Shown here in pieces: positions 38,725 through 52,897 of a stretch of 64,000 nucleotides of DNA. The translations under genes and the position numbers were made by a program. The notes under the pieces are model-generated. The model saw nothing but the letters and a program-made list of their open reading frames with translations, was not told the origin of the DNA and made no database searches. Source of the stretch: Phaeosaccion multiseriatum (taxonomy: Eukaryota > Protista > Ochrophyta, other classes); contig OZ218951.1 of NCBI GenBank assembly GCA_965112735.1, forward strand, positions 4,464,001 to 4,528,000, in the 5' to 3' direction. Position 1 is the first letter of the stretch, and each line of letters opens with the position of its first letter.

Positions 38725-41700
38725 TCAACTGCCGCCCCCCGCGGTTGCTGACTTACTGCACAAGTGGGACAACATGATACCCAAACTGCAGAAGTCCACC
38801 AATCCCTCGGAGATGATGTCTCGCACAGGTTTTACCACCACGTACGTCCTCTCCGTCTCGCTCGTTTGGCCGAACTGCTTGCCATCTGTCTCTCTCTTCA
38901 TGGTGTCCATTTGCTGCGTTGTGATGGACACTTGAGCGGAGAAGTTAGTTGTTCGGGATGGGTTGTTTTTCAGGGGCGTCGCCATTTATGTCGTGTCGTG
39001 CGCGTGTGTGTGCATGAGAAGAGGAGAAGGAGGAAGACAATCAGGAGGAGAAGGAGCAGGAGAGAAGGAGGAGGAGGAAGAGGAGGCGGGAGCAGTCAGA
39101 AGATAGCGAGCCGCGGCAGCAGTCGGCGTTTCTCTCCATCACGAACGCACACACGCACACACGCACACACATCCACACACACACACACACACACACGCAC
39201 ACACACACACACACACACACACACACAGCAGCAGCAGCAGCAGCAGCAGCAGAAGCAGCCCCTCCGCCTCTTCACCTGCAAATACGTGAGCATGATGTGT
39301 GGACACAGTGCCGACAAGCTGCCTCGAGCCGATGTGCTGGAGGGCCTCCTTTTGCACCTCCAGGCCTGTTTCCTCTCGAAGCTCGAGCTGGGCCAAAGAT
39401 TGAAAGTCGAGAGTGGGCTTGAAGCTGCTGCCCCCCGGTAACTCATACAGAATGCTGTTGAGGGGGGAAGCGGGGGGAGGGGGTTAAGGAATGAATGGAT
39501 GGATGGAGTAAGCAGAGCAGTTGTAGTTGTGTGATGCATACAGGCAGGAGGAGTAGGAGGAGGAGGAGGAATAGGGGGAGTGGATAGAGGAGGATAAGGA
39601 TGGCAAGGCGCACAAGTCAGAGAGGGGTTTAAAGAGAAACTATCATCCGCACCCTCCACCTCCATCCTCTCCCCCCCCCCCCCCTGGCGTCTTCTCGTGC
39701 GCGGGCTCCCTCCCTCCCCTCACTCATTCCCTCCAGTATGGACGCCGCGCCTGTGACCGCCTCGATCGACAAGAAGACAGGACTCACTCACTCACTCACT
39801 CACTCACTCACTCACTCACTCACTCACTCACTCACTCACTCACTCTCTCACTCACCCTTCCCTTCGCCTCTCTCTCTTACACACACTCTCTATCACTCTC
39901 ACTCACTCACCCCTCGCTTCTCTCTCTCACACGCACGCTCACACACGCACCCTTTCTTTCTCTTCCTCTCACTTTCTCCCTCGCACTTCGTTTAGCTCTC
40001 TCTCTGTCTCTCTCTCGTACGCACACACGCCCTTCTCTCCTCTCTCTCACTCACCCTTCTCTGTTCCTGACCGGCGACCTGAACTCTTTGATAAGCACAA
40101 CTTCAGTGTCAAGCAGGGCCGTCCCCGGGGGGCTGCAGTAGCAGAGAGTCACCGAAATATCCGGTCTGCCAATTACGACCTTGTGGAAGGGGGAGGAGGG
40201 AGGGACGGAGGGAGGGGGGCCGGGAGAGGGGAGGGAGGGAGGGAGGGAGAAGGTATGAGAAGCAACGCAAAGCTAAACAAAGCAAAGGCAAGCGAAGTCA
40301 AGCGAGGCAGCGCGGTGCTTGGCTGTGGGCTTGCTGCTGCCGCTTCGACTTATACCCACCGTCCTTACCTTGCCTCACATGCACGCCCAACAGCACACCC
40401 GTACCCACTCATCCACGCACCCCCCCCAACTTACCCCCTCACCCACCTACGCACCCTCCTTCCCACCCACCCACCCACGCACGCACTAACCTCGTTCTCC
40501 TTGACCCGGTTCTCACTTTTGACGTAAATGTGTGCATGCAATGCCCAGAACAGCACCACCGTCCCCCCGGGGCCCACACGGAAGGTCCATTTGTGTTCCG
40601 CCCAGTCCAGCCTGTGGAAGTTGGTAGTACGGTAGCCACGCACAGCAGAAGTTACAGATGGAGCAGGTGAGTGAGAGAGTACACCAATGGGTTGAAAGGA
40701 TACACACACGCACACACACACGCACACACACACACACATACACACATACACACACCTATTCCCCGGGCCTATGATGCCTTCTTTGAGCCACGTTTGGAAG
40801 GAGCTTGTCCCCCACACACAGAGAGGCACGAAGCGACACCCGCCTCTGCGCAGCTCGGCTCCCTGTGGTATAGCAGATGGCAGCAGAAGGAAGGGCTTAG
40901 GTGAGCGCACGGAATGTTCACGTGAATTGACTGACTGACACCTGGTACTGATGACTGAAGTGACTGAGGTGGCCAAAGTGAACTGACTGACTGACTGATT
41001 GACTGCCTGACTGACTGGCTCAAAAAAGACCCTGCCTGACACCAGGCACAAACCTTCAGCATGCCCCGGAGCCCTTCCTGCAGGGCCGAGCGATCCCCTT
41101 CCACCAACACGCACCGCACGTCAGCAGCCAACGCCTGATCGAGTAGAGGCATATGGAAGAGTTGAGTCAAATCGGGGAGGGTGGAAGCATGTCGGGGAAA
41201 GTGGCGTCCAGTCTCTCTCTCTGTGTGTGTGTGCGTGCGTGTATATATGTATGTATGTGTGTGTGTGCGTGTGTGTGTCTCTAACCTGCAGCTCTGCTCT
41301 CCTCCTTTCCGACTCCTCCTCATCTCCTGTCTGAGGCTCATGACTTGGCACCCACAGCAACGCTCGGCCTGAGGTGACGCCATCGGAGAGGGGGGAGGGA
41401 GGGAGGAGGATAGGGGGGAGGGGGGAGAGTGAGGGGAAGGAGAGGAGGAGACCGAGAAGAGAAGGGAGGGAAAGAAGGAGAGAGAGCTGCAGGTCACACA
41501 CACACACACACACACACACACACGCACCCACACACGACCCGCACGCGCACCCACGCTCACTTACCAAGCTCAGCCATGGCAAGGAAGCCGTCCAAGTGGC
41601 TGTGGAGCATTCCTACGGAAGAGCATACATCCACACAATAAACAACAACGTCAGACGCCTTCCGCGCGGACAGGCTCCAAGCAGCGTGCTGGGCGGCGCT

Positions 41701-50700: not shown

Positions 50701-52897
50701 CCTCCTCGTGTGGCTGTATCACAAACGGCTGCTGCTTTTTTCGCGCGCCCAGCTGCAGCATCCGCTTCTTCTTTTTCTCCTTCTTTGCGCGGAGCGGCGA
50801 CGATTGTGCCTGCTGCATCACCAACTGCTGCCTATTGATGGTCGTATCTAGTCCGAGAATGTCCGTCTGATCGTGCCCAGTGTACACCACTGCAGAAGAG
50901 CATCTCCGGGACACGTCTTCCTCTGTCTCTGTCTTGGGGCGTATCTCCGCCAGACGCACCAGCCTCGAGGCCGCTATTGTGTGTTCTACGGTCATCTCTT
51001 CTCCCCCCCCCCTCCCTCCCCCTCCTCCTCCTCTTGGTCCTCCTTCATCCCCCTCCGACGCCGGACCACCTCCGCCGCCTCCACAGCGGTTGTTGTTGTT
51101 GTTGTTGGCCTGCAGCTGCAGTTGGTACACGGTGACGACGCCATCTGCGTCGCCCACCACCACCAACTTGTCCTCTCTGCACACACGCATGACGTTAATG
51201 ACTTTGACGGAGTGGGAAGCCTTGAGAAGCAGGGCGGGGCTGTCGGGTCCGATGGCACTCTCTGCACTGTTCTTGTCGGTGCCACCCTTGTTCACATGGA
51301 ACATCTTTGTCGGGGTTGGAGTTTGGAGTTGTTGTAGGTGTGTTAGGGAGACAATAGAGATGGAGAGACAGATACACAGACAGAAAGATGGACAGATAGA
51401 CAAGGTAGACAGATGGATATACATACATGTATAGATTTGATGGAGAGAGACAGATTGATGGGTAGCTACGTACCAGATGGATAGATGCATACTTTTATGG
51501 ATCAACAGACAGAGAGGTGGGCCGATAGACAAGTTGATAGACGGTGACTCACTTGAATGTTGCCGGACATATCCGCGACGACGATGACACTGTCAGAGAG
51601 CCAATCGATGGCAGAGATGGAGGTGCCTAGTTTGAAGAAGCGAGTCGCCCCCGTCATAAAGAAGCTCACTCGGACGATCTTCCCCACTCCACCAAACGCC
51701 ATCTTGCTCTGCTCATGACGAGTGCGTGCGTGCATGCGTGCGTGCGTGTCACGTGTCGTATGTAGAAGTGTTTAAGTGTATATAGGCAACGAGGTAGTGG
51801 AAGTGTAGGGTGGGTAGGGAGGAGGTGGGGCGGTAGGGGGGAGTCGGGGAGTGAAGGGCCAATGTCAATGCGGCATTCGGTCGGTCGGTGTACTTCTCTG
51901 CTCCAACCCCGCCCTGTGCAGCACCTCGAGGAGTTGGTTCACCACGGAACACTTAGCTCGATGGGAGGAAAGCACCCCCTCACACACAGCCACCGGGGGG
52001 GGGGGGGGGTTGTTGGGGCAGTCACAACTCCGACTGTTGTACCTCCACCTACTCTGCTTACTATACTACTTGTACTTCTTTACTCCTACTTGGGGTGATA
52101 CTACTGGTGGTGTTTGGACGTCGGATTACCTGGTCGGGTGAGACACGAATACTAATGACGGCGTCGTCTCCCTGCACCACGAGCTTGGACACCTGCTCCG
52201 CATGGCACGTGCAGTCCGCAAAGGCAAAGTTAGCTCATTCACCGCAGGAGAATACAGAGTTTTTAGTTGTGGGCCACACAGAGACAGAGGGCAGAGCAGG
52301 GCACGAACGCAGGCAGGGAGCCAGGGAAAATGTAGGTAGGCAGGTACGCAGGAAGTGGGGTCGAGTAGCGTGTGTTTATGGATAGCAATGAAGCTTGCTC
52401 CCCATCCCCCTCCTCCCAGTCCTCGTTTTGTGTGAGCTTCCTTACCCCATACATCCACTCCGTCATTCCAGCTTCCCCAAATGCAGTGAGACTTTATCAA
52501 GCTGGCCTTATAAGCACTTTGTGCCACTTACAGGATGCTTGCAACGCCGAGTCTGCTCTTCAATGGTGTCGTCGTCCTGGTTCGTCAAGGTGGGCTTGCC
52601 CTTCTTCTTCGCTCGCCCATTGTCATCCTCTCCCCACCCTCTCCTCTGCGCACCCCTCCTCTTGGCCTCATCCGTGATGCTCCTCATCCCTTTCAAGAGG
52701 GCGGCTGCAGGCTTCTGCAGAGGACTACTCGTAGAGGAAGAAAGTGGGCCAAGCGTAGTAGACACAGAAGCGTTCGCCGCGGCTTTGCCTTCTCCATCCC
52801 TCATCGCAGCACCGCTCAGTAGAGGAACCACCGCCTTGCTGGTCTTTCTACTACCTCCTCTACCGTCTTTCATCCGCTCCCTCGCCCTCGCCATCAT
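38725..52897 (-). CDS. WD40 + ankyrin-like + TRP-type cation channel fused to a nucleoside-2-deoxyribosyltransferase-like domain and a Nudix hydrolase (about 2790 aa, 18 exons)
   Basis: Frame-consistent GT-AG exons: 52897-52532, 52192-52130, 51708-51553, 51304-50458, 50097-49963, 49734-47834, 47485-46985, 46348-44861, 44485-44144, 43625-43203, 42813-41565, 41368-41286, 41134-41054, 40862-40756, 40611-40491, 40179-40055, 39454-39276, 38930-38725 (8373 nt). WD40: 'HTDRIRNVDLSRGAELLAVCGFDKTARLYD'. TRP: 'NAWNWVD', 'FLRVLYYARGFEKLGALVIMVQRM', pore 'LVMYGDF', S6 'MLNLLIAIMSDEY'. Nudix: 'VVLIKEFRSPV...YELPGGS...ELREETGL'. Confidence 0.82.
42816..43050. repeat. (GGA)n tract = (TCC)n polypyrimidine tract upstream of a minus-strand acceptor
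   Basis: Directly visible. Confidence 0.9.
46410..46857. repeat. (GAAG)n microsatellite, intronic; similar tract at about 43808-44077
   Basis: Directly visible. Confidence 0.9.
50180..50360. repeat. (GTA)n microsatellite, intronic in the channel gene
   Basis: Directly visible; lies between donor 50457 and acceptor 50098. Confidence 0.9.

Follow-up and report, generated by a model that had tools for sequence, protein, structure and literature searches.

TRPM2 is a TRP chanzyme that is gated by ADP-ribose (ADPR) and carries a C-terminal NUDT9-H domain, whose enzyme is active in the cnidarian and choanoflagellate orthologues according to two reports (PMC6461439, PMC11479946). In choanoflagellates, WD40-bearing TRP channels (TRPW), a Nudix-bearing TRPM and an isochorismatase-bearing TRPV have been described (bioRxiv 10.64898/2026.06.15.732245). 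TRPW forms a WD40-bearing clade of group-1 TRP channels in choanoflagellates and filastereans, with all described members coming from Holozoa; it is highly variable outside the transmembrane domain (TMD), and one protein of the clade has both Nudix and SLOG domains (bioRxiv 10.64898/2026.06.15.732245).

The window analysed here, a stretch of 64,000 nucleotides from the ochrophyte Phaeosaccion multiseriatum, contains a candidate gene on its minus strand (52897-38725). We rebuilt an uninterrupted spliced ORF of 20 exons and 2695 codons spanning 14 kb, with GT-AG borders throughout, from the start ATG at 52897 to the stop TGA at 38727-38725. Exons 1-7 (52897-52532, 52192-52076, 51708-51553, 51304-51067, 50889-50368, 50055-49963 and 49734-48994), whose borders are uncertain, are followed by exons 8-12 (48783-47834, 47485-46985, 46348-44861, 44485-44144 and 43625-43203) and exons 13-20 (42813-41565, 41368-41286, 41134-41054, 40862-40756, 40611-40491, 40179-40055, 39454-39276 and 38930-38725). 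The preliminary description had reported 18 phase-matched GT-AG exons and about 2790 codons. The uninterrupted GT-AG ORF over the whole interval was recovered, but not these exact numbers, and the mismatch in exon count sits in the low-complexity N-terminal half. The acceptors of introns 1, 2 and 4 are weak. In the 210-nt 'intron' 48993-48784 the frame continues with no stop, and the segment may be part of an exon; if it stays in, the count becomes 19 exons and 2765 codons. Since all four public runs that cover the locus are of genomic DNA (depth even across introns, no splice joints), the status of channel and enzyme as a single transcript is judged from sequence. The genome looks compact: a divergent ORF begins 192 bp away from the gene start, and a gap of ~800 bp separates the gene from an AMT gene lying tail to tail with it.

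The enzyme module at the 3' end (42192-38760) is homologous to the family of gp334 from Bacillus phage G. The family HMM matched residues 2354-2685 of the spliced protein as one domain (245 bits, E 5e-77), and blastp against residues 151-392 of phage G gp334 gave 40% identity over 251 aa with 5 gaps (E 3e-58). Because the HMM aligns in one piece across seven predicted junctions, we regard the enzyme introns, and thus the last eight exons, as validated by collinear alignment to intron-less homologues. Members of the family, found in Bacillus phage G, jumbo-phage-sized contigs and Parcubacteria and Armatimonadota MAGs, comprise ~390 aa in two domains, an NDT-like PF15891 domain (Nuc_deoxyri_tr2, E 8e-16) followed by a NudF/YffH-like Nudix domain. 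One member matched TIGR00052 (YffH/AdpP) at 2e-6, and no PHROG or NCBIfam model was found to match the family. Structurally, the AlphaFold model of gp334 was matched best by the NudF ADPRase (E. coli/Klebsiella) and YffH/NudK (E ~1e-12; target-normalised TM 0.63-0.70 over ~205 aligned columns), whose two subdomains, a beta N-domain and a Nudix fold, have the same layout. In sequence the likeness is marginal (gp334-family profile against NUDT5/ADPRase, E 0.03-0.9), and the NudF sequence had no significant match to the spliced protein. Neither NUDT9 nor TRPM2 chains appeared among the structural or sequence matches listed.

The Nudix half (38760..41092, residues 2438-2685, six exons) consists of an N-terminal beta subdomain and the Nudix fold, and keeps 28 of 30 family-invariant residues. 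Its variant Nudix box, 'GGSSFKPT...LELREETGL' (39360..39435), is the point at which the PDB Nudix hydrolase matches aligned. The box retains the catalytic glutamates E2592, E2595 and E2596; leucine occupies the canonical E7 and R15 positions, of which R15 is non-canonical across the family too. With tblastn, the exon carrying the box found phage G gp334 (4e-8) and LR745208 (5e-8). The preceding half (41093..42192) aligns to the family HMM as a degenerate NDT-like domain of the PF15891 type. It begins with an 'FPRKW..MLAGP' motif at 42192-42133, continues with a low-complexity insert of ~150 aa and has its core at 41691-41093, spanning introns 13 and 14. HMM positions 66-~150 correspond to residues 2354-2437 and, weakly, positions 5-24 to residues 2187-2206; the glutamate of the NDT-like 'ELG' motif is E2394, at 41571. 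Of 25 family-invariant residues this half retains only 5, and with the other 20 lost, NDT activity is unlikely. A Nudix domain at the C-terminus, and an NDT-like and Nudix pair from a family other than NUDT9-H, had both been proposed in the preliminary description; the HMM match and the conserved invariants agree with the former, and the latter is borne out by relatives that carry PF15891 and by the NudF/YffH-type predicted fold.

The gp334 family is collinear with the whole module, at 29-47% identity over ~250-340 aa, and has the variant Nudix box and the N-terminal 'LAGP' motif in common with it. Its members are free-standing and intron-less with an intact NDT-like half, whereas the copy in the window has seven introns, the ~150 aa insert and few NDT invariants and forms the last part of a channel ORF. 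Most likely, the module descends by horizontal transfer from a complete two-domain phage or bacterial protein of this family, which would then have acquired seven spliceosomal introns and been joined to the C-terminus of the channel. In the tree the module sits on a very long branch (2.04; median, 0.17), and the tree therefore fixes neither its placement nor the donor or the direction of transfer.

Upstream of the enzyme module lies a six-TM TRP channel core (43560..45217). Hydropathy revealed six hydrophobic segments at 45217-43560, with S1 at 45217 and S6 at ~43560; S5 and S6 enclose a pore loop, and S6 is followed by a TRP-helix-like stretch. The core is split by introns 44860-44486 and 44143-43626; S3 crosses the junction of exons 10 and 11, and S4 is located in exon 11. 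The S5-pore exon (44485-44144) matched Ion_trans (5e-7) and TRPA1 (4e-8), and also TRPV1-6, while the S6/TRP-helix exon matched Iav, TRPV4, NOMPC, TRPgamma and Chlamydomonas TRP1 (crTRP1). The pore is of the group-1 TRP type, nearest to TRPA1/TRPV. Further towards the N-terminus, Pfam matches and a blade pattern scan delimit a WD40 or beta-propeller region (46985..51708). The Pfam matches fall in the ORFs 49807-47636 (best E 5e-10) and 47596-46925; blades of the 'LVVGDxxGxVxVY' type occur at residues ~202, 260, 756, 976 and 1020, with long low-complexity inserts (acidic, Ser and Thr) between them. Between propeller and channel, an ankyrin-like segment (45842..46312) shares exon 10 with S1 to the first part of S3. 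Its signals are weak (Ank_2, E 0.24; a DARPin fusion, E 0.022), and its nearest clusters in a protein-language-model Atlas, which serve as a lead only, are all Ank/TRPC/TRPV (0.82-0.87). The six-TM channel and the WD40 repeats, like the enzyme module, were hence found where they had initially been placed, and the N-terminus is of WD40/ankyrin-like rather than MHR/SLOG type, with the ankyrin-like part of the proposal being the weaker one.

The link between channel and enzyme depends on one junction, 43203|42813. Intron 12 (42814..43202) starts with the donor GTAAGT; towards its 3' side it consists of (TCC)n repeats and ends in CCCTCCAG. The exons on both sides are in phase 0, and the sole pyrimidine-rich acceptor downstream of the donor is the intron's own, after a 269-nt AG-free zone. 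Its build, GT-rich in the 5' and CT-rich in the 3' part, is that of the homology-validated introns 13, 16 and 17, and by these features the junction looks like a genuine one. Reading past the donor yields 47 codons of GT-microsatellite translation and then a stop near 43060. Behind the acceptor follows a helical segment (42601..42813, residues 1980-2050) that is coiled-coil-like by eye, in agreement with the coiled coil predicted earlier at about 42810-42620. Its codon-position GC (0.61/0.41/0.69) and in-frame codon likelihood are as in the verified exons, and coding codon statistics reach both splice sites, in the post-S6 tail as well as in the coiled-coil stretch. A Gly/Ser/Asp-rich linker extends from there as far as 42193. 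Between 42813 and the enzyme module, 207 codons form an open frame, and the module's 'FPRKW..LAGP' motif shares exon and frame with the coiled-coil stretch, no stop intervening.

An in-frame ATG is situated 6 codons (18 nt) past the 42813 acceptor, and a separate coiled-coil-NDT-Nudix gene is therefore possible. Two adjacent genes on the same strand would then have been read as one, namely a WD40-TRP channel ending at the read-through stop near 43060 and a coiled-coil-linker-NDT-like-Nudix protein of ~710 aa starting at the ATG at ~42795 (or 42786). The apparent compactness of the genome (192 bp and ~800 bp to the neighbours), public runs that cover the locus with genomic DNA only, and the free-standing ancestor of the module would all suit such an arrangement, as would the fact that the fusion was found in no other organism in searches including 1.84 billion representative proteins, metagenomes and viruses. 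We nevertheless consider it unlikely, as the channel ORF would have to finish with 47 (GT)n-derived codons right behind a perfect GTAAGT, and a promoter as well as the 3' and 5' UTRs would have to fit into just 265 bp. Moreover, 43202-42814 is built exactly as the validated introns, its AG-free pyrimidine tract ends in CAG and the phases match across the junction. A coiled coil behind the TRP helix is usual in TRP channels (TRPM, TRPA1), whereas on a phage-type enzyme it would be unexplained.

The gene could also be divided further upstream, so that the WD40 part is a separate gene and the real protein an ANK-TRP(-Nudix) without propeller, with its start at an ATG of exon 46348-44861 (residue 1239 is the first Met there). 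The poor acceptors of introns 1, 2 and 4 in a region rich in low-complexity sequence speak for this division, dynamic programming can always thread some exon chain through open frames that are rich in GC, and here too the runs are of genomic DNA. We regard it as improbable, given that intron 9 (46984-46349) is GT-rich at its start and has a 562-nt AG-free zone before its CAG, and that exon 46348-44861 opens, by eye, with a strand resembling a WD blade ('MLLVADKEGVV'), as though to complete a propeller; WD40-TRP fusions are also known elsewhere as TRPW (bioRxiv 10.64898/2026.06.15.732245). Least credible to us is that the enzyme module represents a decaying relic of horizontal transfer, a C-terminal tail or pseudogene without a nucleotide-related role. 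The 20 lost NDT-like invariants, the low-complexity insert of ~150 aa and the very long branch would be expected of a relic, but the frame is intact through eight exons, the codon statistics are of the coding type and the Nudix half keeps nearly all of its invariants (28/30), with every Nudix-box glutamate among them.

We favour, with a probability of roughly 0.6, a single nuclear gene encoding ~2700 aa in the order WD40-ankyrin-like-TRP-coiled-coil-linker-NDT-like/Nudix, with an enzyme working as proposed in the following; the product of this WD40/ankyrin-type TRP and Nudix gene is probably a chanzyme. One or more WD40 propellers and the ankyrin-like segment would precede the six-TM group-1 TRP channel, and the coiled-coil-like helix and a long disordered linker would lead to a cytosolic enzyme module. 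Judging from the predicted fold of its homologue, the Nudix half may bind and hydrolyse a nucleoside-diphosphate-sugar, most likely ADP-ribose. Four copies of the module would be positioned under a tetrameric pore, where ligand binding could gate the channel or the ligand could be locally destroyed, by analogy with the active NUDT9-H of invertebrate and choanoflagellate TRPM2. Instead of acting as an enzyme, the NDT-like half may now provide a scaffold or a second pocket for nucleotides.

With TRPM2, the predicted protein shares the succession of a TRP channel, a helical or coiled-coil stretch and a cytosolic Nudix domain of the ADP-sugar-pyrophosphatase type. It also keeps the Nudix-box glutamates, as do the 'ancient' active TRPM2s (PMC6461439, PMC11479946). 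It differs in having WD40 and ankyrin-like segments instead of MHR/SLOG, pore exons nearest to TRPA1/TRPV/TRPN and not TRPM, and a Nudix domain of the phage gp334 / NudF-YffH type and not NUDT9, accompanied by a degenerate NDT-like domain. The protein thus falls outside the TRPM2 family and is at most a functional analogue. If channel and enzyme form one protein, the WD40/ankyrin N-terminus and the non-NUDT9-H Nudix domain make this an independent TRP-Nudix fusion, and a second, independent channel-enzyme would stand beside animal TRPM2.

Exon 42813-41566 as a query returned no match in 1.84 billion representative proteins, exon 10 (ankyrin-like segment and S1 onward) had none among proteins of 406-1291 aa, and metagenome and viral scans contained no relative with the same architecture. 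The initial view that this architecture had not been described holds for the combination of WD40-TRP with Nudix and for the phage gp334-type source of the Nudix domain, but WD40-TRP and Nudix-TRP proteins had each been described already. Compared by description only, TRPW resembles the window protein in its N-terminal cytosolic WD40 propeller(s) before a group-1 TRP TMD, but none is reported to have an NDT-like and NudF-like module (bioRxiv 10.64898/2026.06.15.732245). The choanoflagellate TRPV with a C-terminal isochorismatase-like domain is likewise a TRP channel bearing a C-terminal enzyme-type domain and differs in enzyme fold and lineage.

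When the small enzyme exons were searched singly, none matched a Pfam family, and against the PDB only the 59-amino-acid exon with the Nudix box gave Nudix matches, weak ones in which all natural proteins were Nudix hydrolases aligned at the box. A tblastn search with this exon against phage genomes led to gp334 of Bacillus phage G (E 4e-8) and to an uncultured 485-kb phage (5e-8); it had no match in IMG/VR, and a length-limited search for homologous proteins gave no seed match for it. The gp334 protein is 396 amino acids long, is annotated as a NUDIX hydrolase and carries PF15891 (Nuc_deoxyri_tr2) at residues 25-128 above threshold (E 8e-16). 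Residues 2438-2684 of the spliced model aligned by blastp with gp334 151-392 (40% identity, five gaps in 251 columns, E 3e-58), and the module matched all 120 family members compared (E 1e-70 to 1e-38). An HMM of these 120 members aligned spliced residues 2354-2685 to its positions 66-382 of 384 as a single domain (245 bits, E 5e-77), and its positions 5-24 weakly match the module motif 'FPRKW..LAGP'. The motif MGPGPFPRKWTASVMLAGP, with which the preliminary description had opened its Rossmann-like segment, corresponds to the N-terminus of the gp334 family, though weakly. The HMM alignment is unbroken across seven predicted exon-exon junctions and therefore validates those introns independently; together with the N-terminal motif, it shows the whole phage-type protein to be represented, from this motif to the last helix. 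On these alignments the module reads as a full-length, collinear homologue of the gp334 family. The exon 42813-41566, which holds the coiled coil and the module start, found nothing among 1.84 billion representative proteins or in metagenome contigs, and E. coli NudF had no significant match to the spliced protein. The NDT-like piece had no Pfam or phage match, retrieved an unrelated ligase from the PDB and gave P-loop GTPases at 0.78 in a protein-language-model atlas, which is uninformative.

The two halves of the module differ in conservation, which was scored over 55 positions that do not vary in an alignment of 43 members and split at gp334 position 164. From this position onward, the Nudix half keeps 28 of 30 invariants, including E2592, E2595 and E2596, the counterparts of the family-invariant E301, E304 and E305. 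The canonical Nudix box is GX5EX7REUXEEXGU, with metal-binding glutamates. Its variant in the window protein (39435-39360, minus strand) retains the G, the E of 'RE', the EE pair and the final G and U, and has Leu at the E7 and R15 positions, the latter being non-canonical across the gp334 family too. With this box, the half is predicted to belong to the Nudix hydrolase superfamily. The NDT-like half keeps five of its 25 invariants (the W78, D87, E111, G113 and G124 equivalents), 15 of the 25 being aligned and 10 lying in the unaligned N-terminal part, and it contains an insert of about 150 amino acids rich in Asn, Ser, Thr and Gly. It appears homologous by position but degenerate, without the core residues of PF15891. 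The reading as an active NDT enzyme was rejected because most of the invariant residues are gone.

Against the PDB, the family profile matched the PF15891-type structure 4mcj (6e-8) and, weakly, ADP-sugar pyrophosphatases. For an AlphaFold model of gp334, the 40%-identical homologue (pLDDT 89, pTM 0.85), the best PDB matches were the Klebsiella and E. coli NudF ADP-ribose diphosphatases and YffH (E ~1e-12, ~205 aligned columns, TM 0.63-0.70 normalised to the target), and the Foldseek matches listed were all NudF or YffH; for this homologue they show the Nudix alpha/beta/alpha fold, which is thus predicted for the window protein. Profile and model together match NudF, YffH, NUDT5 and NUDT14, and NUDT9 or TRPM2 chains were found neither among the PDB sequence matches at E ≤ 1 nor among the 50 Foldseek matches listed. 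One family member matches TIGR00052 (YffH/AdpP family) at 2e-6. Because of the NudF/YffH matches of the gp334 model, the profile matches and TIGR00052, the Nudix half is assigned by its homologues to the predicted NDP-sugar/ADPR pyrophosphatase type, a different family from NUDT9-H. This agrees with the different Nudix family that the preliminary description had proposed.

The family is large: gp334 has at least 1566 matching proteins, about 380-400 amino acids long. Many members are encoded on contigs of 400-650 kb, a size typical of jumbo phages, and others come from Parcubacteria (CPR) and Armatimonadota MAGs; neither PHROGs nor NCBIfam holds a family-level model. The window gene draws notice to a large uncharacterised NDT-like-Nudix family of jumbo phages. 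In one phage context, the family gene directly follows a Dam-type methyltransferase gene and is near genes for a 5'-3' exonuclease, a GIY-YIG protein and a Ro60/vWA protein. A tree of the window module and the 120 family members placed the module next to an Armatimonadota MAG (SH-aLRT 88) on a branch 12 times the family median; because of this branch length the placement is unreliable and was not used to infer a donor. The enzyme part is related to this phage and bacterial family, and the tree placement gives no donor or direction of transfer.

In the channel part, hydropathy over 45217-43560 detected S1, S2, S4, S5 and S6, with S3 weaker, and this set of six membrane helices, whose re-entrant pore loop is placed between S5 and S6, has the layout of a TRP channel. 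The S4-S5-pore exon (44485-44144) scored 29.6 bits for Ion_trans against a cut-off of 25 and matched TRPA1 (4e-8) and TRPV6, TRPV5, TRPV2, TRPV1 and TRPV3 (1e-6 to 4e-5) in the PDB. The S6 exon had 14 PDB matches (best E 0.012), two of them designed helical proteins and 12 TRP channels, including Drosophila Inactive (Iav), TRPV4, NOMPC, TRPgamma and Chlamydomonas TRP1 (crTRP1), which aligned over S6 and the TRP-helix region. Just past S6 the sequence can be aligned to the TRP-helix region in Iav and TRPV4, yet has no canonical EWKFAR-type box. S5, pore and S6 are homologous in sequence to known TRP channels. Because of the WD40 and ankyrin signals and the TRPA1/TRPV/Iav/NOMPC-type pore and S6 matches, we classify the channel by its sequence as a group-1 TRP of the ankyrin-type lineages and not as a TRPM.

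Pfam searches on the open frames 49807-47636 (best E 5e-10) and 47596-46925 identified WD40/beta-propeller families, and a pattern scan found five canonical 'LVVGDxxGxVxVY' blades in residues 200-1040. The SLOG-like MHR1/2 homology of melastatins was absent from all large N-terminal open frames, which gave only WD40/beta-propeller families when the exons were scanned piecewise; an N-terminus other than MHR/SLOG, as proposed before these searches, is borne out to this extent. Ankyrin signals in the exon 46348-44861 were weak (Ank_2 E 0.24, DARPin E 0.022). Its ten nearest protein-language-model clusters were all ankyrin, TRPC or TRPV, at scores of 0.82-0.87, which therefore serve as a lead only, and the ANK/S1-S4 exon had no homologue at E ≤ 1e-3 among proteins of 406-1291 amino acids. 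The S1-S4 exon begins with a blade-like strand, and intron 9, which bears on whether the WD40 part shares a gene with the channel, looks genuine.

The last eight exons were derived by hand and the others by a simple dynamic-programming exon finder, with manual correction of the junction 47834/47485. The last eight are bordered by GT-AG sites throughout, agree in phase and yield 716 codons, ending at TGA 38727-38725 on the minus strand; the full chain from ATG 52897 comprises 20 exons and 8088 nt, or 2695 codons without an internal stop. An intact chain had been described before, with 18 exons and about 2790 codons; its continuity holds and the exact count does not, the mismatch being confined to the low-complexity N-terminal half. 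There, introns 1, 2 and 4 of the 20-exon model have poor acceptors, and the segment 48993-48784 (210 nt), stop-free and in frame, may be exonic rather than intronic. Several exon borders within 52897-46985 are arbitrary and the exon count is provisional; from exon 8 on the gene model is solid. Frames in 52897-46985 show extreme homopolymers and low complexity, with poly-Thr of more than 60 residues, poly-Glu and poly-Ser, and poly-Leu in other frames. The region as a whole, eukaryotic DNA, is GC-rich at 53-62%, with numerous open frames on either strand and plentiful microsatellites.

Contamination or a chimeric assembly was rejected as an explanation because the module has seven introns styled like those of the rest of the gene and equal DNA depth. 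All four public runs that cover the locus consist of genomic DNA; over 38650-42819 they show even depth across introns and no splice joints. At 40874-41150, in intron 15 of the model, summed contig depth rises several hundred-fold in all four runs (28,671 versus ~75 in one of them), coinciding with a (CAGT)n-like microsatellite; evidently the genome or the sample contains this repeat unit in great abundance.

Channel and enzyme exons are linked solely by intron 12 (43202-42814), and we estimate a probability of about 0.7 that they belong to one gene. That they are separate genes is unlikely on several features of this region. The tail after S6 is coding right up to 43203, where a perfect GTAAGT opens a GT-rich tract; AG is then absent for 269 nt, until CCCTCCAG/ACA at 42813, the only pyrimidine-rich acceptor, and both flanking exons are in phase 0. 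The intron, which contains a (TCC)n repeat, is built like the homology-validated introns 13, 16 and 17, GT-rich at the 5' and CT-rich at the 3' end. If unspliced, the channel frame would gain 47 codons of microsatellite translation before a stop near 43060, and a 3' UTR, promoter and 5' UTR would have to fit into the 265 bp that remain up to the first ATG in exon 42813-41565, which lies six codons past the acceptor. Within this exon, the acceptor and the first motif of the module are separated by 207 stop-free codons, and the stretch before the motif resembles verified exons both in its GC by codon position (0.61/0.41/0.69) and in its frame-specific codon likelihood. Exon-level searches of representative proteins, metagenome contigs and IMG/VR returned no relative with the same architecture. 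A fusion is favoured over two genes on indirect evidence.

The textbook case of NAD+ metabolism coupled to Ca2+ entry by a Nudix ADPRase domain is the channel TRPM2, whose NUDT9-H is regarded as a single addition made in the TRPM ancestor. In the piecewise exon scans and the gp334-family searches, the window protein shows neither the MHR/SLOG N-terminus nor the NUDT9-homologous C-terminus of TRPM2 and is therefore not a member of the TRPM2 family. If the gene model is right, it would share with TRPW the architecture of an N-terminal WD40 propeller on a group-1 TRP. Such WD40-TRP proteins were described as 'TRPW' in choanoflagellates and filastereans in June 2026, in a preprint that also reports TRPMs with a Nudix domain and TRPVs with an isochorismatase-like one (bioRxiv 10.64898/2026.06.15.732245). 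A full-text literature search found nothing on TRP-Nudix proteins in algae, NDT-Nudix fusions in phages or PF15891. The protein is probably a chanzyme built from different parts than known ones, with an enzyme part of phage/bacterial kinship. A second, unrelated fusion would differ in TRP subfamily, Nudix family and source of the module, which has phage/bacterial relatives and now contains introns. Such a fusion, if real, would represent convergent evolution of a chanzyme, a natural experiment on pore control by a tethered nucleotide hydrolase and the domestication of a prokaryote/phage-type enzyme into eukaryotic ion signalling.

One predicted open reading frame combines a TRP pore, a conserved NudF-like Nudix domain and an NDT-like domain in decay. 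In analogy to TRPM2, four of the enzyme modules could hang on long flexible linkers beneath a tetrameric pore, which the coiled coil after the TRP part may hold together. The Nudix half, by the same analogy, would bind and hydrolyse ADP-ribose or a related NDP-sugar and either gate the channel or locally curtail the signal, and the NDT-like half might serve as a scaffold or as a nucleotide pocket without catalysis. TRPM2 of invertebrates and choanoflagellates is reported to keep an active NUDT9-H (PMC6461439, PMC11479946, PMC5671594). It may tentatively be speculated that a photosynthetic protist independently re-invented the TRPM2 principle: a WD40-bearing TRPA/TRPV-like channel would have captured a complete phage-type NDT-Nudix protein and would now gate or self-terminate Ca2+/cation influx on ADP-ribose or another NAD+-derived nucleotide, by means of a NudF-like half that is still active and a degenerate NDT-like half that offers a second pocket. 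If true, this would connect the turnover of NAD+ under stress, on DNA damage or during infection with signalling at the membrane in a lineage outside opisthokonts.

On the 5' side, a low-complexity Gly/Ser/Ala-rich open frame of 510 amino acids (53090-54622, plus strand) is divergent to the TRP gene and starts 192 bp from its ATG; it had no exact match in the gene-position index or protein collection. Downstream of the TRP gene and convergent to it is a multi-exon gene for a PF00909-type ammonium transporter (33413-37929, plus strand), which ends at about 37929; the stop codons of the two genes are about 800 bp apart. At about 34900-36300, introns of the transporter gene contain very long microsatellites with the translations (SVCL)n and (DGWM)n.
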